64,000 nt of DNA from Orbicella franksi (GCA_964199315.1 OZ116703.1:558001-622000), one strand, 5' to 3'. Shown: positions 9,737-31,993, counted from the first letter of the stretch. The notes: generated from the letters alone by a model not told the origin. Program-made: numbers and translations.

Positions 9737-11501
9737 GCGTCCTAGGCTCCTAATGAAGACAATAATCAGACGGCGTTCTTCAATGAGTCCAAAGAGAAAA
9801 AAATCGGAGGAGGTCCCACGCGAAGGAGAAATGCACCATAAATAAACACCGTAAACAAAATAAATATTTAGGAGAGTAACTCTCTGAGGACCTCAATCAA
9901 GTTTAATATTCGTTATATGTTACCAGCATTATCACGAAGGCTGACCCGGTGGCTAAATAAAGTTTTACTTTACTTACTTTTACTTACTTTTACTGTCGGA
10001 TTTATCGGAAGGAACCCGGCTGGAACACATTTAAGAAAAACTCTTGTTATCATTAGTAAGAGACCACCTGTGTGGGATTCACATACCCAAAAGGAAGTTC
10101 ATTGCATCCAGATCTTGGGTATACAATTTATTATCCAATACCAGGGTACGTGATTCGCGTACTTTAAAGGAAATTCATGACATCCATATCTAAGGTGTAC
10201 AGCGACAAGCCGCTCGTTTTGTTAATCATTTTTATGATTCCCCTTTAACACAATCGGGAGCCTGTTCACAGGCTAAGTTGGCAGAGATCTTGTATACGAA
10301 TTGAAAAGACCTCTACGCCACCTTGCCATGCTCTAATATACAGGCAATACTAATGTCAAAGCTTTACACCCGCAAATCCTTTTCTGTGCGGCAACGTTTT
10401 TTTGTCTGTAAAGGATATAACGTGGCTTAGGTCTTTATGACACAAACGTTTCCCTTGTGCAGTCTCTCGTTGCTTACGCAGCTGTCTTTTCGAGCGGTAA
10501 AATAAAATGACACATAATTCTAACGTGTGTTATCGTTTCAGCCCTTTTGGACGAAATTCGTGCAGACCTTTTGTACGATAGCCGGATTCAGATATGGTGT
10601 GTCATATTCTCTTGGTCCGATGCACTGCCAAAAATGATCGGTCGACAAAATGGACAAGAATAACACAGAAGCTCATAGTCCTTGTGCAACGTTTAATTAT
10701 TTTCAATTGACTTATTCCTATGATCTGTATCACAATTGTTTGGACCTATAGTACTATGAGATCCACGAAGATCAAAGGCATCAGAGGTCAAGAAAAGGAC
10801 GAAAAAGACCAGAAAATGGTGTCACGTCTGCCACGATTTGATGATATTTGTGAAGACTCTATTTACTATTTACTTTGAATGAATGATATCCTTCTAGTTC
10901 AAAGAACGTTCACTTATCACGGAAATCTAATTGGTATGCTTGTAAAATAGCAAATCATGCATCACGTTATGATGTCCTGTCCCGCGTCACGCGGTTAATT
11001 TGGTCTCAATCACGAATCACGCTGCTAATTTTGGGGCGATCACGCGTCACACAAAAACCCTTTGCTACCTTCTCGCTGAAAATTTACGATTTTTATTACG
11101 ATCAGCGGATAGTGTGTGCTCTCGGAGCTCCTCGAAAGTTGCCCGCCACTATTGCGCGATCAGTTTACTTCAAAGTAACCAAGACCTGTTGCTATCAAGT
11201 GGCACCATCATGGGCTCGGGGGTGCTTTCCCGGCTATATTAGGCTGCGAAAACTCTGCAGACTGTTTGAAACTCATAGATGTGCGGTATCCGATTGTCGT
11301 TTCCGTGACAGGATCAAACTGGTGCCCAGCGCTTAACCTGTATGGGCTAGGAATTGATCCTAGGCTAGAAACGGTTGGACTGCCTAGTCGGGGATGAGAA
11401 GGGTGGGGGGGGGGGGGCGAGGGGGAATATATTATCTCCCCTGGAGTACTTCTTCTCGCCAGGGAGCTTTTCTACCCGTCACGTGGAGATTACGATTTTT
11501 T

Positions 11502-14500
11502 ATGAGTAGCGAGGAGCCTGGATCGAGTTTCGATTCTTCAGACGCCAGAAGTAACATGGCGAATGGTAATAGTGAAAATGATGCGTGGACAAATTTATCA
11601 CCTCGCATTATTTTTGTTCGTTTAGGCAAAGATAAATCAAAAGACGCTGTTGAAGATGAACTATTCAAGTGCATTAATCAGGTGCTGGGGGAATCAAATG
11701 ACAATGGAAGCGTATTGGAGAAGGCTAAAAATTGTATAAGTTTGCCAGATTTTGGCTCGAGTAGAATAATTCAAGTGGCAGTTGGACCGGAGTTTTTGGG
11801 ATTGCTTTTTAATGATGGACGTGTTTGCAGGGTTAAATGTGTTACAAGAAACCTTGATTCTATAAAGAAATTGCCGAGTTCTCTGGGAAACTCTGAAGAA
11901 CCACTCTTTCAAGTTCAAAGCGACGAAGCCTTTGCACGACAGCTTCAACACGAATTTTTGAATAATGGAGCGACTAGCGGAACCGTACCCGGCCGATCGC
12001 TGGTGTCTGGAACAGCGATGTCTCCGTCATTCCGTGCTTCTGGTAGATCTGGTTTCGGTAATGTTTTTGTAAGTAATCGGACTAAGCCGCGATTTGCGTC
12101 TTGGATGCCTAATACAAGTAGTGCGACTACTCAGACTCCAGTCTCTCGCGAATTCCAGACGGGAAAAGAAGAACTAGAAAAATCAAACAATACTAGTTCA
12201 ACACTTGCGGAAGGAAGTGGGTCAAGTAACCAAGAAACACAGGCAGATACAGCTATGCAAACTTCGAGCTCAATTAAAACTGAAAATCTCAGTAAAGATA
12301 CTTCCAATGAAGGTGTAGAGTCGTCTTGTGTGACAAAGGCAGGTAGCGAAGCAAAAGCCGAAAATCAGAAACCAAAAGGATCGGATAGTGGAAATCAAAG
12401 GCAAGAAAATGCTTTAGACCCTTCTTTATCAGCTGGTTCTAACCCCCGCCGCTCAGTCTCTTCACCAACTCTCCTCCACCGGACAGTCTTTACTACAACC
12501 TTTCCCGGAAATACGAGGCAATGGCCCGCTTTTCTGTTACCAGTTACAGGCTCTATGCCAATAATGCCCAGACGCTCAAATCTTCAGCCCCATGTTGTAA
12601 GGGCCCAGCTTGCTGAGGCGGGTGCATTTCCCAGGGGACCCACGACTGTTAATATTCAACGACCTGATGAAAGGACTTCCATTGAAAGTAAAACTACAAG
12701 CAGCAGCGATGCAGATTTTTGCTATCCTGAAATCGGCGACTTACAATGGCTGGAAGCTGAAAATGTGAGGGAAACTACATCTTTGAGTTTTATTAATAAC
12801 ATTCCTACGCATTCAGATTTGTAAATCATTGACTAAAAAATATTGATTTTAATAAATTGTAAATAATCTTTGTGAATTACAGTGTAAATTAATAACAAAC
12901 AAACAATACTGGCTTTTTCTCAATACTCAAAACACCAGATCTTAGAATAAAAAAGATCAATAAAAATGATGCTGATTTTTGGTTAAAAATTATTGTGATT
13001 TAAAAATAGGAAATTTTTGAAATTTTGTAAAGCACTAATACATGTAGCCAAGTGTTTTCTTGCGGTAAACCTTGCCTTGTTTTGTTTGTTTGTTTTTTAC
13101 TGGTTTTTCACTTTGCTTTTAATAAAATAACTGGTCTTTGAAAAACTGTTAAATCATGTACAGTACATGTATATAAAATTCTTTAAAGGAAGTATGTGTA
13201 ATGAGAACTTATGTGATTTTGTTAACAGGGTAAAGAAGTTGTTTTCTCACACATCACCTCAATGCATTCAGAATTTTTACTTGTTGAGAAAGGAACTGGA
13301 ATCCTTTATCACTGGCCATATGAAAGTGATGTGGCGTGCGACATTGCCATGGAGATCTCGTCCTCCAAAGAACCTACGTACCTTCCATTAGCAAAGCCCC
13401 ACCCATTAGGAGAGGCATTAGGTCTGGACTGTGAAGAAGTTTGTCTTCTGGCATCATCCAATGTTCGTTGCTCACTCGTTACATCAAGTGGAAAGATTTG
13501 CACATTTTATGACAAGCTTCTCAGAGGTGGGTGAGATCCACTGTTTTCAATAGACTGTGGTAATGTATGATGAATGTACAGACTGCTATGTACTGTACAT
13601 GGACTCATGCTCAGTCATTAGTGTGATCTTTCCATTTATTTTACATTTTGCACGGGTCTGGTTTGTTGTCTTGGAGCGGTGGTGTGTGTACATGCAAAAT
13701 TGTACATTTTAATTATATAAAAGCACACTATGGAGTTCATTAACATGTTGTTCATGAGACTGATATTCTTTTTTTTTTATGTAGAATCTAACTGTGGAGA
13801 TCCTCCAGCCCTTATCCAGGAACTCTCTCATCCTGCAATGGCATTCTCTGAACTTCAGGGAGAAAAAATCCAATCACTCAGCTGTAGTGAATTTTTTTCA
13901 AGCTTAATGACGCAGTCTGGTAAAATATTCTGGTGGTGAGTTTTGTGTGTGTGCTTTCTGTAACTTCTTAACTAGAGTATAAAGTGCTATTTTGTGGACC
14001 ACTTGTTCTTTTCATCCCTGACATGGTTTGATATTTCAAGAGTTAGAAACCCTCTGATAAAGTCAGCACACTTTCTTGGTTAAAGTTAAAATTGTGGTGG
14101 TACATGTAAATGTTAATTTAACCAAGTTTGTTGTTAACGTAGTGATCAGCTAGTTTATTAGAATCAAGTTGTCAATGCTTCATCCCTTTGGTGAGGTTAG
14201 TAGCAATATCAAACACAATAAATAAATAAAAATAAGTATCTTAACTGACCACTCCCTCAATGGGCTTATCAGGGCCAATGGAAACAAATGATGAAACAAA
14301 TAATGCAAATGAACATATAACATAGTTGAAAATTCCAACTGACATTAGGCAGACGTGGCCAAGGAGTTGAACTAGGGTCTACCAAGAAACAACTCCAGCT
14401 TAGTGATCAGAGCGGGACTTAACCATTAACCATTCGGCCATACTGCCTCTGTTGCACTACTGTAAGCTCACATTTTATTTGTAGCATTGTCTCAACAATC

Positions 14501-17500
14501 TTCATATGCAGTGATATTATTTTTTTTGGTCTCATCTCAAACTTGTAAGGCTCTCTAACAGTTTTGTGCCCTTCAGTGACATTACAAATACAGTTGTACA
14601 GATATTAAGAACATTCTTACAGAATATTGTTTCATTGAACTGAAGTTTTCTATAATACCGTGTACTAATCCACTTTTTGTTTCCCTTGCTGTCTTTTTCC
14701 TCAATCTTGTTCTTTTCTTCTGCAAGGGTCTTGTCACTTACTCAATACTTATGTGTCTTTTTTCTTTTTCTTTTCTTGATTTTAGGGGACTGTTACCAGC
14801 TGAAGAACGCCAAAACTTCAGGCAGAAGTTGAACAAAGCAACCAATGAAGCTAGTAACATTGGTGTCAATGAAAAAGTCCAGCTGCGTCAGCACTTTCCT
14901 GGGTTTCCTGGCGCATTAGTCTACAAGTGTTGTAAGATCAGGGGACCAGTTGTAGGACGTCTCATTGGTCACGAGTCACCAGAAGGGCCAAGCACTACTG
15001 TGACAAAAATCAGGGTTGAACCGCTGAATAAGAAAATTGACAGTGGTGACAAATCTCTTGGTGAGGCTGGAAAATTAAATGCAGATTTGCCAGTAGAGAT
15101 CACTCCACGAGGAAAAACTGTTGAAGAAGAATTAATTTCCAGTCACAGTGATGCTGTGAGATCCTCCAGCCCGCACACTAGTGTAAGAAGAAAAGCCCAG
15201 AGTATAACTGTGTCAAGTAATGGCTATGAAATTTGGGAAGTCAAGGATGTTGTTTTTCTTGAAAGTGAGAACAAACTGTTGGGTACAGTTGCCGCTATTG
15301 ATGGTCCTCATGTAATTGTCAAAGTTGCCAGTGTAGTGTCACCATCAGAGTCATCATTACGTGTGTTTAAAGTCTCTGAGCTGGAGTCTGTACTAAGTGA
15401 CAGTCCGGGAAGTACTGTGACTCAGCAGTTACCAACCAGTTCATTATACAGAGGGTGCATTCAACATTCTCCAAAGTGTATTGTTGGAAGTTCAACCAAA
15501 TTGGGAAATAAAGAAGTCCATGCTGGTCTTAAGCCTGTTGCCATGACAACCACATCAGCAGGAATTTCTCTCGTTGCCCAACGCTTGTCTGACAGCAAGG
15601 CATTTTTCTTGGGACCCGCAATGGACCAAGTTATCGACAGCAGTAAAGTTTACACCTGTAGTAGTGATGTAAATATTTCCTCAAGCAATGACCACGGTTC
15701 ATGCACAGTGGATGCTGAAGCCATCAGTAGCCGAGAAGCAGCTCTCATACCAACATCTTTGGTACATTCAATGACACACAAGAAGCCAGTCACTGGATCA
15801 AAGAGAAGACGAAACAGTGGTGATGACGATGATGATAGTGTTTCAAATAATGCACAGGCGAATTCAGCAAATGAATCATCAACCCCTGATGGTCTTTTTC
15901 CATGTAACTTTCATTGTTCCAGTCACAGATTTCCATTACTTCACTCCACCAGTGAATATGACATTGTATTGCTGACTGATGTTAATGGCTGCCTGTATCC
16001 GAGGCCTTATGGCACAAAGTTGTCAAACCCAACTGTTGGAGAAATTCCTCCACTGCATAGCTTTGGTCTTGGGACAAGATTAGGCCGAAGTTCTGAAGGG
16101 AGTTCTATACCTGAACGAGTATTAGTAGCATTTATAGGTAAGTGGGTCCTGTTGTTCAGAGCACAACTGAGCTAATTTAGGATTACATTTAATTTGAATT
16201 TTGCAGTGAGATTTTCTGTTTCCAATATTTATCTTTCAGTTCTGACTTTCAGTTTGACTAGTATTGAACACCTCAATATGTTAGTAATAGCAAACACTTG
16301 ATTTAATATATGATTTAGATTTGTTGATTAGAAAACAGCCATAAGAAAATACAAAATCATGTTTTCATAACTTGATAGAAACACAGAACTAGCACAAGCT
16401 GTTGATGTAATGATGGTGTGAACAAAGAGAATTTTTATTTTGATTATCAAAGTTAACAAGTTGTTTCTTTTTTTTCGTCACGTTGTTTTCTAAAAACATG
16501 TTCTCTGTGTTTCTATAGAGTTACAGAAACGCTCATAAAAGTTTGTGAGAACTTGCCTGTGACTTTTGTTCCCACAGCATTTCTCATTCTCCCAAACTTC
16601 CACTTGTGTTTCTATAACTTGATAAAAACACAGTACATGTTTTCTATTTCTTAATTAATGCCTCATTATTTTTGGCTTAGTATTAATCTGCTTTCTAACA
16701 GCTTGGAAACAGTATAATTTTCTGTCTTTTACTGTGCCATCACTGTGCTTTCTAATATACTGGTCACTTAATTTTTAAACAAATGTATGAGCCTGCAAAG
16801 CCCCTAAAAATTCAATAAAGCACAATTTATCATGAATAGTCAGCAATAAATCTGCCAGTAAATAAATTTTGATGTAATATATCAAACACGAAAGACTGCG
16901 TTTGACCACATTTTCCAAACATTGAGAAAAGAGCTGAATGTACGATACATTCATGTAGCAGAATATTTTTGACAAACTTCAAGGTGTTTGAAGTAATGCT
17001 GAGGGGTAACCTTGCAATGGACTAGTATCCTATCCAGGGGAACTCTTAGTCGCTTCATGCTACGGAAACTGGAGATAAGTGCCGACCTAACGGGCCACTT
17101 GGCTTGTATGCAGACTTTACCTTGTCTTTTTTTCGCCAGCATTTCAGGAACAGCATCTTCTGCAAGCTGTGCAATCTGGAATTGTACAAAAGATCAAGGG
17201 AGCGCTAAACTGGCTTAAACAGCTGAACAACAGTAAAGATATTGGGAAGGGAAGTAAAAGTGTCACAAAGGGCTCCAAAAAGATGGGCGTCACAGACAGT
17301 CATGGTCAGATTTATGAAGAACCAACAGGACATGTGACTGTTATCAGCAAGAGAGTTGCACAGCTACTTCATCAACAATCCACTTCTAACCAGAATGTGT
17401 TGCATATTTGCTGCGGCAATCCAACATTTGTTGAAGAGCCAACTGAAATCCAGAATGCTGTGCAGAGCCATGGTAAGGGAACATCTGCATGGATGGTTTC

Positions 17501-20500
17501 AAAATTCAACTTGATAACTTTAATAGTACAAAAAAATTTTCACTGTTATAGGCTGCAACCATGTTAAATTTGTAGTGACCATGGCATTCAAAAGTCAATT
17601 AAGGTGGCTCAAAACAGTTTTCAGTTAGATTTCAATGGGTCGTTATAACCGCTAATTATCACTTGATGCTACAATCATGGTACCAAGAAAATGCCCACTC
17701 ATTGGTGAACACGCTGTTATCATTTTCGTGACACAATAGGTTACCATAGCAACAGTATGACTTGCTGGAAACTGTTTTGAGCCACCTTAATAGTACATAC
17801 ATGTATATGTACATGTACATTCTTTGCAGCAGGTAAAATGTTTCTCTTTCAAATGATGTGTGACAACTGTGCATGTAGATTGCTCAAAAATCTAAAAAAG
17901 CTCAAATGGAATGGCCGGGCTTTCCATCCAGCAACTGTTCTGAAAATTTCAAGCTTTGTAACCAGAAATTTGTAATGCTATTTTCATCTAACTTATCTCT
18001 TTCTTCCGTCAATTCACACTTTGCTCTACAAGTACATTCATGTTTACAATAGGGTTCTGCAAGAGGCTTGTTGTGTTAATTAATTTTTAATTAATTCTTT
18101 CTATTTATCATGTGTTGTGTTTTCCAGCTGCAGGTCCATCTACAGCTGCAAATCCTGTGAATTCAAATGGTCTCCCAATAGAGGTAGCTGGCTTACACAT
18201 GCTGGTTAATGATGAAGTGTTTGCAAAAGAGCTTGTGCCAATGGTAAGACCTACACAGTATATGCGATAGAGTACAGTAACATTTAAATGTGATTGTTGT
18301 GTTAAGGGAAAAAGCAACATAAAACAAGCAAAGGTTTTAAGCATTGGTTGTGAAGACCTATGAAACAATTTCATTGTACATTTGCGCCCTTGGTATGAAT
18401 GAACCAAACATTGCATAATTGTCTTGTGCCTGAAGAGAGCAGCCGCATTTCAAACACCTTGAATGCACTTATTGGTAAAATTTGCTTGCATTATTTACAG
18501 CTTAAAGAGCGCGATGCTCGTGGAAACACTCCCTTCATGACAGCAGTTCAGTGCCACAACTTTAAGGCTGCAATTTATATTCTGGATTTTGTGGAGAGTA
18601 ATAAAGGTATTGTACAATCATATGCAATCATATGTAAGATTTCATTTAAAAAAAAACAACAACAGATATTGGTCATAATTCTGACCTTTTATTTGTTTGC
18701 TGTTTGTAGACAACATCACTCCAAACTTGCAGTGTTCGATGAGGGACATGATCTATCCTGAGTCGTTTAACGGCATGACACCTCTTCATGCTCTTGCTGT
18801 AGCTTGCACGGAGAATCTTCCTCCTAGTGGGCTAGGAAATAGTCTGACAGTGACCAACCTACCATCCAGTTACACTCCAAGGATTCTGTTGAAGCTTTTC
18901 CAAGGCAGATATCCATCAGCTTACAGGGCTACAATACCTCCTGCTTCAATGGAGGGCAGAAAGGTGAAGTTTTGTTTGTCACCTTTATTTCTTTTTCCCG
19001 GGATAGCACACGACTTGTATTTGGTGTTATTGTGTCGTATATTTAAATAGTTACTGCAAAGTCAAGGAACAGTCACTAAGGAAGCTATGGCGCAATATTT
19101 TAAGTCATATTTCTGACCATCAAAAAGACTTTCGAATTAAAACTTAACCTAGTAGTTTTCTTAGGGTAGAAAAACAATTGAAAGAAGTAATCTTACATTT
19201 ATGTTAAATCAAAAAGACGGATTGCGAACGATAAACTTTAAAAAAATCGGCGAATTTTCCAAGATGCGTCATGTACAATGTGGCTGATCTAATTCCATTT
19301 TTGTTCTTAATTTTTTGTATTAGTACTGTCGCAACAAGACACCAAAGCAAAGACTAGTAGAGAAACTTCGGAAAAGTAAGGTGAAGAAGATCCCTAAGAA
19401 ACCAGCTGAGTCCAAGAGAGGAACCCTGTTAACACCCACTACATCAGGCGGCAATAGCCATCCATGGTCAAGGCGTTATGTTGAAGGAGGAGGGCGAATT
19501 CCTGTAGTTGGCAGTCGACGAGAATCACAAACAGGTGAGCTGATGTTTTCTAAGAGCTTTTCTCTTTCACGTGGCTACAGTGTATGTCAGAGTGGGTAGG
19601 TACAGTATTCAGAGGCAGTCGCTGTGTAGTAGAACTTATGAGCTCCTGAACTAAAGCATTGTTTCTGTATATTACGTTTTGTCCCCAAGGTATGGTGACA
19701 TTTTCTGATCCTAAAGAACTCCGGCAAGCCCTGATCGAGATGGATCATCACATGGTATCTAGTGAGATGACAGCGCCTGAAGGAGGACTTGCCAGTCTAG
19801 TACAGCATGTTCTGCATGTTAAACTCACTGAGGTTAGTACATTGGAATGTCAACATTTACCACTGATTGACCTGAACAACTCAGTCCTATTTTTCTCTGA
19901 AAGTGTTAAGCAAGAGGCATGAAAGAAACTGTATTACAGTGTTTATTATTTGTTTTAGCCCGTGTAGCTAGCGGACTTTTGGCGATGTATAAAACTACAG
20001 TACATGTACCTTTGAGCGTTACTATTGTTACCTCATGTAAAACCACCAAACAGGACCGACGAACTTCAAATATTTTGAAGATGCGCCACACTCGCCATAC
20101 ATGTACATGTGCATCTTTTACAATCAAGGCCGCCTTTTGTGATCAAATTTCTTTTTGTTGGAAATGAGTAGTTTTGCGCTGGGGTGGGTCAGAAACATGA
20201 AATAACACAAGACATACTGTTTACGTAAAGTATTATTTTCAGGGTTAATTATGGAGTTGACAAATAGTCTTAGGCCCGTCCACAATACGCCGGAGGAATT
20301 CGAAAACGGAGGTTTCACTTTGAAAACGCATCAAATGTTTTCCTTCCGCGTTACTCCGGAAGAATTTAAAAACGCAACAATCACCGGTCATTTTGGATTG
20401 GTGTTTGAGGAAAACTCGGCTGGGAAATCACATGATTATCGTGACGTCACCGTGGTGTGGACGGTTGGCCTTACCGTAGAAATAAAGCTGCGTTTTCAAA

Positions 20501-23500
20501 TTACTCCCCCGTAGTTTTGACGGGGCCTCAGTGTATAAATGCATGAACCTTGAGTGTGAAAATGTGAATAATTTATAATGCTCATTTCTTGTGATACATC
20601 GTCAATACAAGTTGGCTGACTTGTTTTAGAAGGTCCTAGGCGTGCATTTATGATAGTGGTATTACATTAGAGATGATGTTGTGAATTATCCAGGTGGAAA
20701 ATGACGAGACAGAGAGAACAGAAATGGAGGTGGGTGTCCGAGGAGGCGTGTATAATGTGTCCAATGTTGAAGGAATGGCCAAGATAATACCCAAGACACT
20801 GTGCTTTACTGATCATCCTACGCAAGACAAAATAGTGGTGAGTGGAAACAATTCCTGCTTAAACGAGCTACTTCACGGTTTGCGCATCGTTAAAAGTTTA
20901 GCCTAAATTTTTCAAGTTTGTCGTTTGCAATCCGTTTTAATCTTCCCCATCCTTAACCATCCTTGTTTCTGTATGGTTTCTTATTATCCCTTATGTGTTT
21001 TTCTATGGTGTTTTTAGTGAACCACTATTTCAGGTTTCCTTCGATTTAAAGTTAATTTTGTTCATGGCCAAAATAACTCAAAACACCGTGACTGAACTCT
21101 TGAGCTAACACTGGGAATCGATGCAGACTGATGTAAACACCTATTATGAAAGTACCTTGTTCTTGATTTTAACATCATTAAGCCAGTGGGAGTTGTTTTG
21201 TACTAATTACGAGCGAGACCTAACCGATGTAATTATGTGTTCTTTAGGATGCCGAAGATAAGCTTATCGGCCAATTGTTTTCTCGTCTTTTGTCCTATTC
21301 AGAGGTGAGTGATTGGAATTCTATTTTCTTGAACAGGAAAATATGCAATATTTATTGTCGAAAACGTTAGGATGCTCGTGTGTTAACATTTCAGTCTCAA
21401 GTCCAAAATGTTGATAGAGATTTTAAATTCTCATGTAGAACTTCCTGAGAATTAATTTTGGTGCCATATGGCTACTTAAATTGAACCTTATCTGATGATT
21501 CCCGTAATTCTCATCAACTGTCAGCTGGGCTAACTATCAATATTGTATAGAGATATCAGATGTCGATCATGTTTTTCAGATTGCTACCGCCAGAAACAAG
21601 GAAGGCGACACATCTTTGGCATTCCTGGTCAATAATTCTCGATGGATTAAACTGAACGCCAGCCAGAAGCTGCGACTCACCAAATACGGGAACCTTTTGT
21701 TTGGACAAGACTCCACATTTACTGTCAAACGGGAGCTTGGACTTCAGCCAGAAACCTCCAGACCTGCCGAGAACGGTGAAATAATGGCTGAGATCAATAT
21801 AACAGGTGTGACAGATGCCTCCATGCTGGAGAGTAATCTTCTAGCTCAACTCGACGACATCTCCAGCAGCTTTCGAAGCATTGTAGATACACTGACAGCA
21901 CTGGAGAGGAGATGTTCACCAGAAGATGCACAGCAGCAGAGCGTGCAAGCAGATTCTGATGAGACAGCAAAGCCAGTAGACAATGAAGCTTCCCCCAGTG
22001 GGAATGACCCAACAGCTGCAGGAGCCACGGACAGTCCAGCGCCTGATTTGATGAGTTTCCCACCAACTGTAGCAAGTGTCCCTGATGATCTATCCAGTGA
22101 GAGTTTTCCTGTTTTGATACAACTTACACACAGCTGGCCCTCTGTCGCGTCAACTGTTCTGGGGTACTACCCTATGGGTACTTCTGCTGGGGGCTCAGAC
22201 GTGGACATGTCCGAGGAGCAAAAGGGTTCTGGTGGTTCACTCCAGAAAGGTCCGTCACGATCTGGTCCAATAGAGTCTTGCTCCCTGGATTCGTTTGTCT
22301 TTGAATTGCTTTCTCATGCTGACGAAGCTGTCTTGGTGAGTTTTGTGGAGACTATTATCACTGAAATGAACAAGCATCCTCAACTCCTGACACTGGACGC
22401 GGCTCATCGGATTAGTGAGCTACACATCCCTCCAACCGCCAGGGATGTTGCTATGATGGTTGGAATCAAGTTTCTGAGGTCTGTCATCCGACAGTTAGCT
22501 GTACACCTCAGCAGGTCTGGCTTATCCTATGTTGACCTTCGAACCCGCCTCGGGTCCAGTCCTTCAGCGTCCAATGTCCGAAACGTTCAGAGTGACAATG
22601 TGGAGTTCAAGAGGAAAGTCAGGTGAGACAAGAGATGCCCGGCCCCCTGACGTACAAACGTCTGTGAACTTGTCAATTACTAGTAAATGTACCTTTTTAG
22701 CGGGTTTCAATCCGTTTCTTTTTAAACTTAACACGTTGATAAACTGAAACCAACCTTTTCACATGCGTTCTGTATCGTGGTACGTTACCCATCTTTGTTA
22801 TATGGTTTTTGTTTGTAGCCGATATAACGCGCACTCTGATCGGCTAATTTTAGGGTATTGTTCCACGGTCCGATTTTGGGCCAGCAAAAACAAACCACAA
22901 AACCATGGAATAAACAACTTTCTGACCTCGAACGTTCGGTCTTTACGGGAAAATATAGACCTCGCTATCGCTCGGTCAATACGGCAAGGTCTCGGTTTGA
23001 GATTTTCCCGTAAAGACCTCACTCTCGGTTAATAAGTGGTTATTCCTGTGCAAACAACTTGTAATGACCATAACCTTCGTTTCACAGAGAACTTGACACA
23101 CGACCGCGATGGTGAATTTTTAAGTAAGCTGAGTTTCAGGTTGTCGGTGCTCTGACATTCCTTTCATTGTTAGTTTTATGTTAGCCAATGATTACACCGT
23201 AGCTAAGTTGACTCTTTGGGACATTTCCATAGAGCAAATAGCTTCAACGTGTACTTCTTTTCTCAATGTAACCACGCACAATTGTTTGTCCTTGTAGAAT
23301 GATTTTGCGCTCATTTTCATGGCTGGCTGTGCATGAGTTGATCCAAGCCGCGGAGGCTTCCGTTGTTCCCGTCAGGGAAGGTGTGGCTAAGCCTCAAGCC
23401 CGCTCCACAGGCTCCTCAGTCAGTAACAGCATACCCAACCCTAATGGAGGATTCCCGGGTGCTAGGTTCCGGTTTAGACCAGGTAAATGTTTACTCTGTT

Positions 23501-26500
23501 AATCAGTACAGTGGAAATCAGTACAGTGGAAATCAGTACAGTGGAAATCAGTTCGGTGTAAAACTAAAACTAAACTTAAATGATATCTTAAACCGTTTAC
23601 AGTTGTCATAAAGCTAAACTCAAAGCAAATAACACAAAAAATAACCCGTGTGCTTGATGAGACATGCAGACACATGCATGATTGGTTTGCGTGAACACAG
23701 ATACCAGTCCTTTCTTAGTTACAGTCGTCTCTTGTTTTGTTACAAATGAATGAAAGTGAGCCACGCGTAAGTAAATCGAATTTGTCAAATATCGTTAAGT
23801 TTGCTCTTTTAGTTTTCTCAGCTTTTTAATACTGTAACTTGCATGAAATACGGAGTTGTTGTTGTGCAAACTTCGCCATAGTGTCATTTTACAAATCTTA
23901 AAATCTGATTATTTTATGATGGGCAGGAATTCGTGTCAGTGGTCCTCATGACCCTTCTGGCAGGGCGCAGGGTCCCCCGCTTAGGACAGCTCAGAGGTAA
24001 GGAGAGTGAGAAATTCATTGTCATGCCTTGTGATTTGAATACAACATATTATACATTAAAAGCTCGCGTTTAAGAACCTAAAATTTAAGAACCTGATAGG
24101 CTAAAATTTCCCAGTTTTAAAGCAACCTCCACATAAGAACCATTCTAGGCTAAAATCTCAATACAGGTTTTTATTTCCAAAATATAGGTTTTTTGAAATA
24201 TAATACAGTACATCACAAGCGATACAGAAAAAGTTAACAAAAACTAGGCAGAGCACTGGCAGTGTTATAAGACCACAATATCACTGTACTATGAATGATT
24301 CAATATGAAGGCCACACTTATGAGTACAAGTTGGTTTTTAAGCAAAAATTAAGAACCTGATGATTAAGAACCTAGGTAGCCTAATTTCACAGTAAACACC
24401 ATTTATATAAGAACCTATGGAGGCTAACTTGAAAAAACCTAGGTTCTTATACGCGGTTTTTACTGCGTAACTGTTGTCGCATCGAAAAGACGAATGAAAA
24501 TCCTGTCGTTCATTTGTTTAACTGTCGTCTTCTGTTTTGTCGTCCATACTCAAGTTCCTTGCATGTTGTTTTTCTCTTTATCCACCAGGATTCAACAGAA
24601 CAGGTCCACTGAAAATTCTTCATCGTGCCGTGGAATCAGATTAGCAAACATTGTTGAAGGTTCTTCCGGGACCTCCAACAAGAAACCTTCTCCGAGCCCC
24701 TTTAGGGCCTCTCCGTTTGAGCTTTCAAGAGGCCTTAACAAAAAGAGCTCTCTATTGGACAGCGACAGTGATTCCGATGACGACGCAGATCATATTGGAG
24801 CTTTAAGCGGCGAGGGTGACAGCGATATGGAACTTGACGAACCAGATCGGCGGTCCGTATCCATGGCGACAGGAATTACCCATGATCACCCTTACGCGTG
24901 GGCTTTGGATGGACGCGTTGCTAGTTTAAATGAAGGAAACGGCATGCCTGGACATATTCATGTAAGGCTCAACAAACCAAACCATACTTCGAGAATATTA
25001 ACGGGCAGACCCAAGAATCCCTTACACGGGCCCCTGTCCCTTGTCATATGTGACAATTTACCCATTGTTTATTGCGAACTTGTGGATTTAGGTGCCAGTG
25101 TTAATAGGCGAGTAGCAAATTAGATGTAACATTTGGTTGGCGTCTAATTTTGTATAGGTTGCTTCTTTTTCTCGTCAGGTTCGTCACGAGATAGGTCCGT
25201 TCCCCGGTGCTATCCCTGTGATTTAGGTACTAGCGGTGGGATTACTACTGATACCCGTGGGGCGTGTTTCCTTTTCGTCGGATTCCCCGGTAGTGTACGG
25301 TATACTAATGAACTAAACGTTCTTTGGTTATAGCTTCCACAGTTGGCGACTAGCGTGATTTCCCCGCCCAGCGTTCACACTGGAAACTGTTACTTGACTC
25401 GCATGTTCTCACGCCTTGTCAAGGAAACATTGGACCTGATGACCACACTCTCCCAGGACACTGTAGCCTCGCCACAACAGGGTGCGGTCAGTGAAGGCAT
25501 CTTACCCGCTCTGTCGATAGCACAAGAAGAGTGCCAGTCGATTCAGAACTCTGTCATGTCCAACTTGGAGAAGTCATGGGCGTGGCTGGCGGGGGTGCTG
25601 GATGTGGTTGAAGGGCAACTTAGAATGGGGAAAAATTTTGATACCAAGGTAGCCTCTAATTTTCTTATTTAGTATTTCAATAATATCGATCGCATTTTAT
25701 ACTAATTGTCTTAATTGCTCTTGTAGCATTAATCATGCTAACCATTGTACTAAGCTAATTATACTAACCGATGTAAATTTGTGCAATATCAATGCTGTGA
25801 TCAAAAAAGTTGAATCTTTTTGTTGCTTTTCAGCGGTACCTTGCCTCACTCCAGCGCCCTGAAGACACGGAATTAGCCATGCTGACAAGGACTGTGTCAA
25901 CTATCCCCGGGGCCTCCCCTGAGGAGTATCTAATGTTTCTTTTGAGAGCTCATAACAACGAGCATAAGGATTCACTTCCTGTTGTTGATATGCTGTGGTG
26001 AGTGGTTTGATTCACTTCCTGTTGTTGATATGCTGTGGTGAGTGGTGTGATTCACTTCCTGTTGTTGATATGCTGTGGTGAGTGGTTTTGGGAATCAGAT
26101 ATTTTGTTAAAACTTCGCGATCAGTTTTGTGTTGCCAGATTGATTGCCTGAACAGGCATTCGTGTAACTCGCGAGTATGACTAAAATTGTCCAGTCGGCA
26201 TGCCGGCAGGTCAAGCAAGGCGTCCCGAAAGCCTGAGTCTTCGGTCGATCACTTAAGACTTTAATGATCTGGTTACATTTTTTCCGTACTTTACCAGAAT
26301 TCCTCTTCACCATGTGACTCAAATTGTATTCCTTGTAGTTATGAACATGCTGTGTATGTCCTGGATGCCTTTATTTACTCCATGACGCACTGGCCTCGCG
26401 CTGGAGTAAGCTTCGACCGCAGTATCTCTGTGTCGAGTCACGATGGAGACGATTCTGGACCCAGTTCCTCTCAGCCTTCGCAGCACGAAGATGCCTCAGG

Positions 26501-29500
26501 CCTAGAAACTAGGCCTTCCCCCAACACGGAGACCAAGCGGCGACGGAGGCACAGCTACGAGCGAGAAGCCATCTTGAAGTTCTTTGGAATGGATGTGATA
26601 CACGCGGACAGGGAGAAGTTTCTAAGCAGTCTGCAGGATACACTACAGCAGAAATTCCCCAAGGTCCCTAAAGCATCGTGGGAAGTGTTTACACATAACG
26701 TGACAATGGCTCGTCAGAAATCAAGTGACGACACAAAGATGGCGTCACAGAGGGAGACTGATGAGGAGTCTGGGCTGCCGACCACGTTTAGTGCGATGGG
26801 CATGTAAGTAATTATAATGAACTTATCAGTTCTATACGGATTGTGAGAGTGTTCACACCTGCTTGTATCCTAAGCTGATAACATAAAAGCTGTTGCTTAT
26901 TTTATCGCTTTTTCTTGTAGACATACCTACACCACTCCCCTAGTACTGAATTGGTCACCTGATCAAGTGATAGGCAGATGGAAAATTTCTGTGGATCTGT
27001 TTTCCCGCCTTTTTCTGGCGGATGGCCCTGGGGCCGAGAGAGACAGTTTCCTAGCAGCACGTGCTGGTGTGGCGGGAAGGTTGGCCAGGTACGCATGCGC
27101 GTTTGGTTCCGCACGAGTTGGACGGCAGTGTATGCTTATATAGCCGCTATTGAGTGGTTAAAAATAAATAACAAGCTACTGTAATTTTCGTGTTCTTTTA
27201 TGTTCAGGTTCCGTCGCGCTGCTTCTTATCTTCGTGAATCCATCACAAGCGAATCTCAGCAGCTTGGTGTTTATGGAGGACTGGGCGGGAGAGTCGGTAC
27301 CACTCTCTCACTGTCAATCAAGAGGCAGAAGATCCAGGAAAACACTCTGAGAATACTTGGAGAGGTAATGTTCATGGCGCAACACAAGAGGTCTACCAAA
27401 GATTTTTACACAACAATTTTGGGCGAGTTTATTGGAAATAGTTTCCCTTACCAGCTGCCATTCTGTGAAGCACTTCTGTTGTCAGTTGTTCTGCTATTAT
27501 TCACTTGTAAAACAAAAACTTAAGGTCGCAAGTTCTTAGTTCTGATATTACCAGGGACTCGCTGAAGATAGCCTTTTTTGTCATTCGTGTGACAAATCGT
27601 GTTTGTAGATATCTTTAGATTGGCCTTAAAATGAATCCTAATTTCCTCCTCCGAACCTATCTTGCAGATGTCCACATTTCACTATAGCAACCTACGAGTC
27701 AAATTCGAGGGAGAGGAGGGGTCTGGGCCTGGAGTGAACCGAGGATTTTTCGCTGCAGTGGCGAATGCATTGAAAACGGATGAAAAGGTTAAGTACGACA
27801 CTTTATGCCACTTTAAATTAAGGATTGTGCACAAACATCAAAGGTATCATCAAAGTTATCAAAGGTAGTCCGCAAATCGCACAACGCTCTTGTGACTACC
27901 GTGACTGATGACGTCACCGTGGCTGACGACTTAACCGTGGCTGATGACGTCACCCTGACATGCCATAGGAACCGTGATTGATGAACTGCTGAAACTAGGA
28001 CTATTCACCTTTAATTGGTCATTGTTACCTTTACTTTATAGACACACAGAAAACTTGAGCTGAAGTCGAACGATTGACGAGAGGAAGGAAAATGTTTATT
28101 GCGTTGTGTTATTTGCATTGTTTCTCAGCTAAGGCAGTTAACTTAACAGTGTCATCTGATTTGCAGTTGCCAATGGAAACCACAACTCTACTCCACGAAC
28201 CAGGCAAGTTACCAGAGCAGAGTGGCTTCTATGCGCCTAAACCATTTGCCTATTCAGAGAAATCCCCGCAGGAAAATCACACTAAGGTAACTATCTTCGA
28301 TCTTGATGAGTTAATAACTGAAGGGAGCGCTGTGAGAAAGAAACTCTCCAGTTTCGGTAAAGCGAAAAAGAAAAACATCACAACTTTATACAGGAAACAA
28401 ACTCTTTGTTGCAAAGTCTCGGAGTAGTTCTTAAAGAGTTTTCGATTCTTGCCAGTCAATCACACGTTAGTACAAATCCCTGTGAACACTCTGAAAATTG
28501 TCACGCCCGCGTGACGTTACAGAACATGTCCATAAGCGTTGCTCCCTAGCAACTTCTCTGAAGGTTCCGTTCGTATTGTCCGTCTTATTTGGCCATGTTT
28601 TCATGTTTGTTTCAGACTAATCGCCTGAAGATGTTCACAGCCATTGGACGATTCATTGGTTTGAGTCTTTGGTTCAGCAACACTGTTCCACTAAACTTCA
28701 GTCGCCACGTGGTCAAATTCCTATTGGAAAGGTAATTTTCTCTAGAGCACTTTCTGCATTGCTTATCAAATGAACAATCTTCATTTAACTTCTCGCATTC
28801 GGTGATAGTCATTATGCCTCTTCGCTATCACGAGTATTGATCTGAGGTGATAACAGAAGCGTCATTTAACTGTTTAGTTTGTATTTGGTCCTGTGGTAGA
28901 GGTCCTCGTCGTGATTGTTATTTCCCAGTGATACGTTTAAATTTCGTTTGGTATCTACAAACATGGTTGATCATCGCAGTTATACACTCACCTTAAGCAG
29001 TTGTGAAATTAAAACCTGAAAAAATTCAGGCGACCTCCGCGATGTCGATGCAGTACTCTACCAACTGAGCTATCAAGCCAACTGGGAGCTGGTCATATTG
29101 TGAGTTGGTAATATACCCGTAGATAGTGAAGAATGCAAGTGAATATATTCACTTGGTTCAGTATGGTATCTGTCAGATAACGTTGTTGGCAAAGTAATTT
29201 TTTACATTTTTTCATCATGATGATTGTTGTTTCGTTTTATTCAGGGATGTCACGTGGGAAGACCTTGCGTTTTTCAATGCTGACTTGTTTGAGGGTCTCA
29301 GTCGTATGGTTCTTGACAGTCATCACCCAATGATGACGTCAGAGCGCTTTCAGGCCACGTACTGCTGTCATTTTGAGGTGAATTTTTCAAGTTAGAATTT
29401 TCTCTTCATTTTTATGATTGATCATTTCTTAAATGTTCTTTTTGCCGAATGAGGCATGTGAAGAAAATGTCCTATTATCGATCATGTTATTTATTCTCAT

Positions 29501-31993
29501 AACATGTCTACTTGACGATTGATATTGGTATTGTAAGGAGATGTCAGATGTTGGTCAGTTTTTGGAATTAAAGGTCGTCGATTGAAGGGCTTCAGAGCTA
29601 TGCGATGCCTGCTTAGTTGCATGCGAGAGGTAGAAAGAATTTTTCTTACAAATCTAGACAATAATTTGCCTTTCACTTTCTGCCATCAGACCTCGGTCGG
29701 CGGTACTACAGAAGAACTGGTTCCAGGAGGCTCGCATATTCCTGTGACGCCTGAAAACATCTACAAATACGTCAGGTAATAATAATGTTTATTGTCCAAC
29801 TGCAGCGATTACTGTCCAAATAACAGTACAAATATACAGCGATATTGTACAGTAGAAAACCTGTTTGGCGTATTTGTACAGTAGAAAACCTGTTTGCCGT
29901 ACAGGTCGGCGCGCCCACGCAAAACTGTCACACTCTCCCTCTTTCATTGATAAATTTACTGACTACAGCTGTTGGATAATAAATCTCTTATTAGATGTTT
30001 GGTGTTAGATGTTTTGGTGTTTCGTTGTTTGTATTTTGACTCGTAAAAATATACAACGATACTACACACCAAAACATCTAATAAGATATACGTATTTTAA
30101 TGTTACTGTGTATTTATTGACCTAGTGGAAAGGCTGCAGGGGTAAAATATTTCAAATGAATAATCTTTTAACTCCGCTGGCTAGCACAGCCTGCTGTCAT
30201 ATCGTATCGGTATTTAGTAAAATATTTTCACTGCGCTATGCAGTGAGAATAAGTTGTAAGCTAGTACATGTGGTTAGTGTCTTGCTCATGACCAGGGGCC
30301 CGTTTTTCGAAGGTCCCGAAAAGTTTTCGCACCCGGAAAGTCGTAGCAAACTCTCAAACCTTCTGATTACAGAGCTTTGTTATTCACGTATTTTTAATAT
30401 GAACAGAGGTTCTCTTCATACAAGAAGTTTCAGGCGTATGCACCTCTCTGTTTTCAGAAAAAGATCAACTAAAAATGGCTTTGCGGACCCGAAAAGTTTC
30501 TGGACCTTTCGAGAAACAGGCCCCAGGTCAATGCAATGACGAGACATTTACTCTCACAATGTCTGTCTCCTCCCAAGAGCGTACCTGAATATGGTGCGGG
30601 TAACCCTGAAGGCGTGTATAGCTCTCGTGTAAACAAGGAAGATTTGTGAAATAGAACTGATGCAAGTTTTTCATTATTGTTATTTTTTGCAGGTTATATG
30701 CCACTAAAGTAATGATCGGCTGTGTTGAGAGTGAGCTGCGAGCAATGAGAAACGGACTGCATGACGTCATCCCATCAGAACTCTTGTCGTCTCTAACACC
30801 AGAGGTGAGCCGTCGGTCATATTTTCAGCAGTGCGACCATAGTCAATATTGACATGGTGGTAACTGCATGAAATGTAGCATATATGTATGTCCTATCAGA
30901 GAGAAGATACTTGACCGTTGTACTTGTGATGAGGGTTGTTCTGTGAAAGTCACGCAACTTTCTTTTCTCTATCTTCACATGTTGTTTAGGATTTTCAGTT
31001 GTTGCTGTCAGGTGGTACAACAGATGTGGACATAAACCGTCTTCGTTCCGTCATCACATTCAGCAACAGTAATGGCTGTTCAACTGATATACTCGACAGA
31101 TTCAAACGGTAAGTGACAACTTGCTTTCAAGCTTAATAATTCCTCGACTTTTGGATTGGTAACAACTTCCTGCATGTGTCGTCACACGTTGCATTTTCAG
31201 CTGACCATTCTCCTGCAAACTGCTGCCTTAGCTTGAGTTGGATAGCTATAGAACCCTTTTTAAGGCGTTCACCTACTTTGATTTCAAGTTTACCTTCATC
31301 TTTGTTGTGTTGGCTTTACCAGGTGGTTCTGGTCCATTGTACAGAAGATGACTCCTCTTCAAAGACAGCAGTTGTTGTACTTCTGTACAGGAAGTGCAGT
31401 GCTTCCAGCATTGTCCGACAGAAGGGATCCTGACCAAGGTACCATTCAGTAATTCATGGTTTGTCTATGAGCGAAAAGAGCTGTTGAGTTTCTCTGGTTA
31501 AGCCTTCAGTCTCTGTCAGTGGTTGCTAAGTAATCAGTGTTGTGTAGGGTTTTGTCGGCTGTCGCCGCACTTGCAGACGTGACAAAGTTCCCGTATGTCC
31601 GCTAGTTCTCGAGAACTCTCATACCTTGAAGCATGTCGTCATCAGCAAATGTCACATTGCCACGAGATACCGACGTAATTCCAGGCTCGATAAGATCTCT
31701 GAAATCAAGTTCTAGTGGAAGCGAGACTGTGAATAGAGGTCACACTAGTTGTTGAAATTAGACCAGGAAAAAAAGCCCACTTGTTTGATACAAAAACAAT
31801 AATGACAATTCTTTTTCTCTTTTGTTTTCCAGACCTCAATATCACTGTGGACGTTATCAGTGGAAATACCAAAGCGTTACCCATGGCAACCACGTGCGGT
31901 CAGCGGATGAGCATTCCGTTGTACCCATCAAAGAAAATCCTGAAGAGAAAGCTCCTCCAAGCCATTCAGTGCCAGGGATACGGCTTAGGCTGA
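11502..31993 (+). CDS. UBR5: UBR5/EDD/hyd-like HECT E3 ubiquitin ligase, divergent (~2757 aa, 29 exons)
   Basis: Exons: 11502-12764, 13229-13526, 13785-13935, 14786-16137, 17140-17472, 18128-18243, 18501-18606, 18710-18963, 19324-19534, 19690-19832, 20694-20837, 21248-21304, 21580-22622, 23298-23482, 23927-23996, 24589-24961, 25343-25648, 25834-25997, 26339-26803, 27208-27364, 27668-27787, 28167-28286, 28616-28731, 29245-29377, 29690-29775, 30693-30804, 30990-31108, 31323-31438, 31833-31993. The sum is 8274 nt, all introns GT-AG with consistent phases. UBR5-like blocks occur in order: VAVGPEFLGLLFNDGRVCRV, GDLQW, ELQGEKIQSLSC..FWWG, TPFMTAV, FLRSV, VVPVREGVAKP, LLRAHNNEHKDSLPVVD, VKFEGEEGSGPGVNRGFF, IGRFIGLSL, and HECT catalytic LPMATTC..IPLYPSKKILKRKLLQAI. 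Confidence 0.9.
14229..14450 (-). mobile_element. Degenerate tRNA-derived SINE (second family)
   Basis: The reverse complement begins GAGGCAGTATGGCCGAATGGTTA (A-box-like). The element is truncated or degenerate. Confidence 0.5.
16494..16642. mobile_element. Small TIR element (MITE)
   Basis: AAACATGTTCTCTGTGTTTCTATAGAGTTACAGAAAC pairs with the inverted GTTTCTATAACTTGATAAAAACACAGTACATGTTT. Confidence 0.6.
16993..17121 (+). mobile_element. 3' fragment of the same SINE family, in UBR5-like intron 4
   Basis: GGGGTAACCTTGCAATGGACTAG...CTTAGTCGCTTCATGCTACGGAAAC...CCACTTGGCTTGTATGCAGACTTTACC matches 62385-62507. Confidence 0.75.
17603..17786. mobile_element. MITE with TTAA target-site duplication (Kolobok-like termini)
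   Basis: ttaa-GGTGGCTCAAAACAGTTT...AAACTGTTTTGAGCCACC-ttaa: a perfect 18-bp TIR. Confidence 0.8.
20272..20528. mobile_element. MITE (PIF/Harbinger-like)
   Basis: Left end tta-GGCCCGTCCACAATACGCCGGAGGAATT; right end AATTACTCCCCCGTAGTTTTGACGGGGCC-tca. Confidence 0.7.
23501..23552 (+). repeat. 3.5 x 15-bp tandem repeat
   Basis: (AATCAGTACAGTGGA)3 AATCAGT. Confidence 0.95.
24059..24461. mobile_element. MITE with subterminal TAAGAACCT repeats
   Basis: AAAGCTCGCGTTTAAGAACCT at the left and AGGTTCTTATACGCGGTTTT at the right. Several internal TAAGAACC copies. Confidence 0.65.
25969..26088 (+). repeat. 3 x 40-bp tandem repeat spanning an exon-intron junction
   Basis: GATTCACTTCCTGTTGTTGATATGCTGTG|GTGAGTGGT(T/G)T at 25969, 26009 and 26049. 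Confidence 0.95.
27898..27959 (+). repeat. 3.4 x 18-bp tandem repeat
   Basis: ACCGTG(A/G)CTGA(T/C)GAC(GTC/TTA) units. Confidence 0.85.
28975..29140 (-). mobile_element. tRNA-related interspersed repeat remnant
   Basis: The reverse complement has GATAGCTCAGTTGGTAGAGTACTGCA (tRNA A-box/D-arm) but the T-arm/B-box is missing. Confidence 0.55.
29845..29902 (+). repeat. 2 x 29-bp tandem duplication
   Basis: TTGTACAGTAGAAAACCTGTTTG(G/C)CGTA twice. Confidence 0.85.
29985..30086. repeat. Small foldback with a tandemly duplicated arm
   Basis: TCTTATTAGATGTTT(T)GGTGT occurs about twice at the left, and its reverse complement ACACCAAAACATCTAATAAGA occurs at the right. Confidence 0.6.
30296..30523. mobile_element. 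MITE with CAG target-site duplication (Harbinger/ISL2EU-like)
   Basis: cag-GGGCCCGTTTTTCGAAGGTCC...GGACCTTTCGAGAAACAGGCCC-cag. Confidence 0.8.

Follow-up and report, generated by a model that had tools for sequence, protein, structure and literature searches.

A UBR5-family HECT ligase paralog in the coral Orbicella franksi with an RRM-like segment in the place of the UBR box

The window analysed here, that is the whole 64,000-nucleotide stretch G000:C6:558001-622000 (GCA_964199315.1, OZ116703.1) of the 497-Mb genome of the coral Orbicella franksi, contains no N and carries on its plus strand a gene for a HECT ubiquitin ligase of the UBR5 family, which is present once in the genome. UBR5 has been heavily studied in connection with cancer, nuclear receptors, orphan-protein quality control and K48 chain building, and its solenoid serves as the mount from which substrate-binding modules are presented to the HECT domain. 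In the window gene the slot that in UBR5 holds one of these modules, the UBR box, contains no such box; what it encodes is a conserved segment with profile-level similarity to an RRM (RNA recognition motif), interrupted by a long basic loop. A separate and complete UBR5 is encoded elsewhere in the same genome.

Gene structure and family membership

The features to which we refer are the following (positions are counted from the first letter of the window; dN/dS is the ratio of nonsynonymous to synonymous substitution rates).

11502-31990, plus strand: whole gene of the UBR5-family HECT ligase paralog, about 30 exons and about 2,760-2,830 amino acids, approximate outside 16135-25651
18501-18606, plus strand: exon 7, with the upstream flank helix LKERDARGNTPFMTAVQCHNFKAAIYILDFVESNK, the equivalent of human UBR5 residues 1107-1134 (RNA junctions; profile E 3.7e-6)
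18710-18963, plus strand: exon 8, a second ankyrin-like GxTPLH helix and then the first half of the RRM-like module (RNA junctions, Pfam RRM_1, PDB profiles, dN/dS)
19324-19534, plus strand: exon 9, a 70-residue Lys/Arg-rich insert in the beta2-beta3 loop, including KLRKSKVKKIPKKP (RNA junctions)
19690-19832, plus strand: exon 10, second half of the RRM-like module (RNA junctions; 98% identity in the 71% ortholog)
20694-20837, plus strand: exon 11, a 48-residue acidic linker (long form, 9 reads and 2 contigs)
21248-21304, plus strand: exon 12, start of the downstream flank helix DAEDKLIGQLFSRLLSYSE (RNA junctions; flank alignment to canonical coral UBR5, z about 5.5)
21580-22622, plus strand: exon 13, remainder of the downstream flank IATARNKEGDTSLAFLV and helical scaffold (RNA contigs; orthologs P0001-P0026)
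31833-31990, plus strand: last HECT exon, with the catalytic Cys codon at 31895-31897 in ATTCGQRMSIPLY (Pfam HECT E 8e-10; PDB UBR5 C-lobe E 2e-7)

To assemble the exon chain we combined RNA junctions with the ortholog transcript P0031 and with conservation across five orthologous loci of other assemblies (L034, L035, L037, L036 and L068). RNA was placed on positions 17050-22950, as raw polyA reads of run X23 and as RNA contigs of runs X1 and X14, and there GT..AG junctions bound the exons 17138-17471, 18127-18243 and 18501-18606 as well as 18710-18963, 19324-19534, 19690-19832, 20694-20837, 21248-21304 and 21580-22622, each junction being supported by 3-9 X23 reads and by contigs in both X1 and X14. 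A single RNA contig of 3783 nucleotides spans exons 8-13; the join 16135|17138 rests on loose ends of X1 and X14 contigs and not on a listed joint. In all, 14 RNA runs contain 29-49% of sampled words from the stretch. The 30-exon model is free of stops and encodes 2,764 amino acids (a coding chain of about 8.3 kb); exon 2 is probably drawn too short in it, and the true protein probably has about 2,800 residues or slightly more.

Several lines of evidence bear on the family to which this protein belongs. The upstream flank of the slot aligns to canonical coral UBR5 with a score of 63 (shuffles 23.1 +/- 4.4; blastp E 1e-4) and the downstream flank with a score of 43 (shuffles 21.4 +/- 3.9), and in neither case did any of 2000 shuffles reach the real score. 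A PDB profile search with a five-species exon 7 profile gave human UBR5 residues 1107-1134 as its top match (E 3.7e-6), and the pre-HECT exon at 26910-27089 matches UBR5 alone, at residues 2181-2217. The last exon is a HECT C-lobe by Pfam, its Cys aligned with the catalytic LPTANTC motif of UBR5, and its best PDB match is the UBR5 C-lobe with HACE1 behind. Weak tblastn matches to the canonical coral UBR5 gene run colinearly along its length. Exon 13 found no UBR5 match in the PDB by phmmer because the region is too diverged, and the window gene as a whole is far more diverged from human UBR5 than is the canonical coral copy. Taken by homology, these matches identify the gene as a UBR5/EDD-family HECT ligase and a paralog of the canonical UBR5 of the same genome. 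HECTX, a cnidarian and placozoan HECT family (Marin 2010; Grau-Bove et al. 2013), was considered as an alternative assignment and rejected, because HECTX is class III and E6AP-related and the window gene matches UBR5 outside its HECT domain. The flank motifs DARGNTPFMTAV (within 18501-18606) and NGMTPLHALAV (18770-18800) also resemble the ankyrin GxTPLHxA consensus, and DARPins and ankyrins rank behind UBR5 among the PDB matches of the flank exons.

The sequence-only reading of this DNA had already drawn exons 8-12 with their phases and had assigned both flanks to UBR5. Its exons and phases are exact, because the RNA junctions of all three runs fall at just those exons; its junction check, carried out here, joins exons 7-13 without a gap and with no additional slot exon in the transcripts; and its flank assignment is borne out by the shuffling and exon 7 profile results above.

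An RRM-like module interrupted by a basic loop

That same reading took the slot for a new module made of unrelated sequence, almost free of Cys and with a Lys-rich stretch. The composition is as it described: of the 220 residues that the flanks enclose, 3 are Cys and 6 are His, and the stretch KLRKSKVKK lies at 19363-19389. The segment is indeed conserved and not junk, with dN/dS of 0.02-0.04. It is unrelated to the UBR box, as that reading held; it is not, however, simply unrelated sequence, since it resembles an RRM fold into which a basic loop has been set. Across the window and its orthologous loci two conserved blocks stand out. The first, in the tail of exon 8, reads GLGNSLxVSNLPxxYTPxxLLKLFQxRYPSAYRAxIPP, and in the window comprises the candidate strand beta1 SLTVTNLP (18841-18864), helix alpha1 YTPRILLKLFQGRY and strand beta2 SAYRATI. 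The second, which takes up all of exon 10, reads GMVTFxDxKExRxALxEMDxHxVS...HVKL and comprises beta3 GMVTF, alpha2 PKELRQALIEMD and a probable beta4 HVLHVKL. We read the two blocks as the RNP2/beta1-alpha1-beta2 and RNP1/beta3-alpha2-beta4 parts (RNP, ribonucleoprotein) of a putative RRM of about 85 residues, in which the beta2-beta3 loop is expanded by a Lys/Arg-rich insert of about 75 residues that is encoded mostly by exon 9. Exon 9 is basic and poorly conserved (in orthologs it is 63% and 43% identical, where exon 10 reaches 98% and 75%). A conserved RRES (19516-19527), which looks like a basophilic-kinase site, ends exon 9 just before beta3 in the cnidarian orthologs.

The RRM-like blocks and the UBR-less slot are found in 5/5 of the orthologous loci readable. 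Exon 13 identity to the window is 71% for L034, 49% for L035, 38% for L037 and 29% for L036. A tree of 22 exon 13 homologs has three deep clades, of which clade I includes L034, L035 and L037, clade II L068 and clade III L036, and the family comprises more than 20 clusters at 50% identity, counted on exon-sized fragments. The HECT end of L036 is 76% identical to that of the window (QRMSIPLYPS..ILKKKLLQAIQCQAYGLG). Between the window and L034 exon 8 has a dN/dS of 0.04 (dS 1.75) and its RRM-like half 0.02; exon 10 has a dN of 0.009 with saturated dS, and the introns cannot be aligned (no blastn match). Judged by these substitution rates, the module is under strong purifying selection. In clade III orthologs (L036 at about 11050-11130; P0009, P0011, P0012, P0014, P0015 and P0054) a box rich in RGG/RG, a low-complexity motif typical of RNA-binding proteins, follows the LVGKRFLNSV..LALEHSRV helix; the corals do not have it. 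When residues 200-360 of P0011 were used as a protein query, 14 metagenomic exon fragments were returned and no full-length or named relative.

The similarity to RRMs was first apparent at the level of single exons. RRM_1 is the sole Pfam family matched by exon 8 translations, in 4/5 orthologs, at profile positions 1-29 and with a best E of 0.1. A PDB profile search with exon 8 placed the RRMs of Prp24, Sex-lethal, Nam8 and RBMS1 on top over positions 43-72, and the best match of exon 10 is residues 58-81 of the PABP3 RRM. For the joined domain we built a local RRM hidden Markov model (HMM) from 28 single-exon RRM_1 matches of the same genome; the five joined domains with the loop excised rank first against it, at 15.3-16.6 bits (E 4e-4 to 9e-4), and the best of 1000 shuffles reached 6.5 bits. 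An hhalign comparison of the joined domain with the genome's RRM alignment gave a probability of 96.4% and a P of 1.3e-9, which with L068 included became 96.7% and 3.7e-10. About 57 columns are aligned, and the one large gap coincides exactly with the beta2-beta3 loop, where the exon 9 insert lies. The real score was 48.5, against 18.2 for the reversed control and at most 14.5 for 20 column shuffles.

Several observations weigh against an RRM with a recognition function. The RRM_1 gathering cut-off of 20.7 bits is not attained: exon 8 alone gives at best about 11-13 bits (E 0.1-0.3), and exon 10 alone has no Pfam match; Pfam was run on half-domains, and the loop was excised by hand ahead of the profile comparisons. 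Where aromatic residues of an RRM stack on RNA, at RNP2 position 2 (LTVTNL) and at RNP1 positions 3 and 5 (SQTGMVTF), the coral has Thr, Thr and Met, and an RNP aromatic is present only in L036, as a Tyr at RNP2 position 2. AlphaFold2 modelled the halves alone with low confidence (predicted local distance difference test, pLDDT, 60 and 73) and recovered only beta1, alpha1 and alpha2. The basic loop could just as well serve as a nuclear localisation signal.

The strongest competing explanation draws on these same observations. In this view the slot is a linker, largely disordered, that contains a nuclear localisation signal and a few helices, and the RRM likeness (LxVxNLP...LF, GxVxF) arose by chance. 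Besides the Pfam scores below threshold and the missing RNP aromatics, it is favoured by the AlphaFold2 models, where exon 10 is shown as two helices, and by the weakness of the docking support for a packing of the two halves against each other: in complex prediction the two halves, given as separate chains, scored 0.44 (best of 3 controls 0.01) with at least 96% contact agreement between runs and a partner pLDDT of at least 71, and this mark is reached by 51/78 solved complexes and 2/108 mismatched pairs, a pass at or below 0.60 counting as weak. Chance resemblance does not readily account, however, for halves that independently match the right sub-regions of RRMs in the right order, nor for an hhalign P of 3.7e-10 with clean controls. 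Exon 10 is moreover 98% identical between corals at saturated synonymous sites, which is unlike disorder, and all three deep clades have the motif pair. We consider the disordered linker improbable, and we retain the RRM-like module as the better description of the slot.

The missing UBR box and the canonical UBR5 gene

In human UBR5 the box binds three zinc ions through eight Cys and two His and sits in the fourth armadillo repeat of the solenoid, and it belongs with other substrate-binding modules that are presented to the HECT domains (PMC10425842). A complete canonical UBR5, with UBR box, MLLE and HECT end, is encoded on the minus strand of contig C8 of the coral genome. Its UBR box reads HVLCCNDTCSFTWTG...GHDCK followed by LKRTAPTAYCDCWEKCKC, with an intron after GHDCK. 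The UBR-box exon occurs seven times on C8 at 98-100% identity, between 21.02 and 23.49 Mb (starts at 21,022,503; 21,289,784; 21,772,095; 22,203,736; 22,657,526; 22,931,600 and 23,485,058), and each copy is accompanied by an MLLE match and a HECT end. There are thus seven near-identical and apparently intact UBR5 copies in C8:21,007,000-23,490,000, spaced by 267-553 kb, the first of which is covered by L026-L033; the array is due either to segmental amplification on a large scale or to an artefact of the assembly. The second, canonical UBR5 for which the sequence-only reading had proposed a search therefore exists, and with the family matches given above it makes the window gene what that reading had suspected, a UBR5 paralog with no UBR box.

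Might a UBR-box exon have been overlooked, through alternative splicing, in an intron or in an assembly gap, so that the gene is an ordinary UBR5? The genome-wide Pfam scan for PF02207 lends this idea some credit, since it proved insensitive: it listed boxes that read as UBR1/2/3-, UBR4- and UBR7-type only and missed all seven canonical UBR5 boxes. It is a false negative for UBR5 and we did not rely on it; since the seven boxes that it missed are split by an intron, negative family scans are unreliable on this intron-rich genome. The case for absence is therefore made locally. Pfam found no zf-UBR in the exon-bearing open reading frames (ORFs) or in the ten most Cys/His-rich plus-strand ORFs of 17.3-24.6 kb. 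Over 1114 six-frame pieces of 9-34 kb, a local UBR-box HMM made from the genome's own boxes never exceeded 7.5 bits, and the same HMM gave 67.6 and 16.4 bits on two canonical UBR5 control exons. Aligned to the canonical UBR box, the 220 residues of the slot score 23 (shuffles 23.6 +/- 3.7), so they show no similarity to it, and no transcript or reading frame with a UBR box was found at the locus. The window has no N that could hide an exon, the RNA joins exons 7-13 without a gap (exons 8-13 within one contig), the five orthologous loci are equally UBR-less, and P0031, an ortholog protein that begins only in exon 10 and is the one transcript-derived member of its cluster, joins exons 10-13 directly; no spliced protein that covers the slot is among the cluster members. 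An overlooked exon is therefore very improbable, and by its sequence the window protein contains no UBR box able to bind N-degrons.

Two further parts of UBR5 were sought in the window gene. A genome scan for MLLE (PF00658) found the canonical copies and gave no match in the window, where in the HECT N-lobe (27668-28286) ALKTDEK joins LPMETTTLLHEPGKLPEQSGFYAPKPF directly, without the MLLE-containing UBR5 insertion of about 200 residues. The insertion is likewise absent from the ortholog L036, in which the N-lobe segments that flank the MLLE position lie 95 and 159 nucleotides apart. For UBA/EDD, Pfam found nothing at E up to 1 in the 478-residue ORF that contains exon 1. To judge from these comparisons the protein has kept the catalytic cysteine and has no MLLE, with UBA undetected. 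Exon 1 carries at 11919-11948, roughly at the position of the UBR5 UBA, the residues SDEAFARQLQ and then HEF, which resemble a motif interacting with ubiquitin (MIU).

A decaying or neutrally drifting UBR5 duplicate with no function of its own, as the loss of UBR box and MLLE, the lack of a detectable UBA and the strong divergence from human UBR5 might suggest, is already contradicted by a stop-free coding chain of about 8.3 kb, dN/dS of 0.02-0.15, the kept catalytic Cys, spliced polyA RNA in several studies, and a family of three deep clades and more than 20 clusters.

Possible recognition function and comparison with known ligases

Our preferred reading, to which we give a probability of about 0.7, is that the window gene encodes an expressed UBR5-family ligase of about 2,800 residues in which the RRM-like module with its basic loop takes the place of the UBR box as recognition module. 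Because the flanking helices are kept and the RRM-like module is inserted between them, the slot module would be the recognition element of an otherwise UBR5-like ligase, and it would face the HECT domain as the UBR box does. Targets would then be chosen through tethering to RNA or RNPs, or through a protein that binds the RRM surface, and not through N-degrons or PAM2 partners. Among possible ligands, a nucleic acid (RNA or another) held chiefly by the basic loop on an RRM scaffold would come first, at somewhat below even odds; a protein, as in UHM-type RRMs, is a tentative second; and a mainly structural role, or one as a nuclear localisation signal, is unlikely. The RGG-rich box of clade III and the K-rich loop hint at a link to RNA. 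RNA binding is nonetheless putative, since the module lacks the canonical RNP aromatics.

The window protein can be compared with four kinds of known protein. It resembles UBR5/EDD/Hyd in its length of about 2,800 residues, in an N-terminal segment that matches the start of the RCC1-like domain, in the solenoid (1107-1134) and pre-HECT (2181-2217) segments, in the catalytic Cys and in a UBR5-type C-terminus (...ILK.KLL.AI...). It differs from them in having an RRM-like module and basic loop for the UBR box, no MLLE in the HECT N-lobe, no UBA/EDD by Pfam, other intron positions around the slot and a much more diverged sequence. UHM-type RRMs are protein-binding modules that have the RRM fold and degenerate RNP1 and RNP2. 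The window module is like them in its predicted fold and in its degenerate RNPs, but it has no R-X-F after alpha2 and no acidic alpha1, and a basic loop 3 of 75 residues is not known from UHMs.

RNA-binding ubiquitin ligases (RBULs) may carry HECT, RING or RBR domains; the 26 putative human ones that have been enumerated, sorted by RNA-binding domain, are RING-type, and K-rich regions are a recognised RNA-binding class among such ligases (PMC5707401). With the CNOT4-type members, which combine RING and RRM, the window protein shares a ligase catalytic domain, an RRM-type module and a K-rich region (PMC5707401). It differs from them in that its catalytic domain is HECT, its RRM-like module lies inside a solenoid repeat and is not free and terminal, it has no RNP aromatics, and its RNA binding is putative. 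Animal UBR5/EDD proteins have been described with EDD, zf-UBR and PABP domains, and neither an RRM nor a second paralog is mentioned (Grau-Bove et al. 2013, PMC3673628). The simpler homologs of Salpingoeca rosetta and Capsaspora owczarzaki are, like the window protein, UBR5-family HECT ligases without the full EDD/zf-UBR/PABP set (PMC3673628); compared by description, those are orthologs of unicellular holozoans, whereas the window gene is a second gene beside a complete UBR5 and has gained the RRM-like segment.

In the literature searched we came across neither a HECT ligase that carries an RRM nor a UBR5 paralog without a UBR box, and the family appears to be undescribed there; it probably exists in public proteomes as an unnamed "UBR5-like" prediction. 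With its scaffold and catalytic domain retained and the UBR box swapped for an RRM-like module, the conserved paralog amounts to a natural domain-swap experiment. It would indicate that the armadillo-repeat slot accepts unrelated recognition domains, and it points to a possible RNA-linked HECT ligase. A bolder version, which we regard as doubtful, would make this the first HECT-type RNA-binding ubiquitin ligase, representing an ancient sister lineage of UBR5 in cnidarians and other invertebrates that is absent from the standard model organisms and has exchanged its N-degron reader for an RRM with a long basic loop. Were this true, RNA or RNP context, not the protein N-terminus, would decide the targets of a UBR5-type chain-building machine.

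Between the module and the downstream flank, exon 11 (20694-20837 in the window, 8936-9043 in L034) has two in-frame donors, one after 20729 that yields a 12-residue form and one after 20837 that yields a 48-residue form. The long form is used in Orbicella franksi and the short one in the ortholog transcript P0031, and codons 13-36 are still conserved as coding (dN/dS 0.15). The introns that flank this exon contain repeats (20202-20595 and 20793-21186) with very high RNA depth and many loose ends; these look like fragments of transposable elements, with an ORF that includes EEFENGGFTLKTHQMFS, and they do not belong to the gene.

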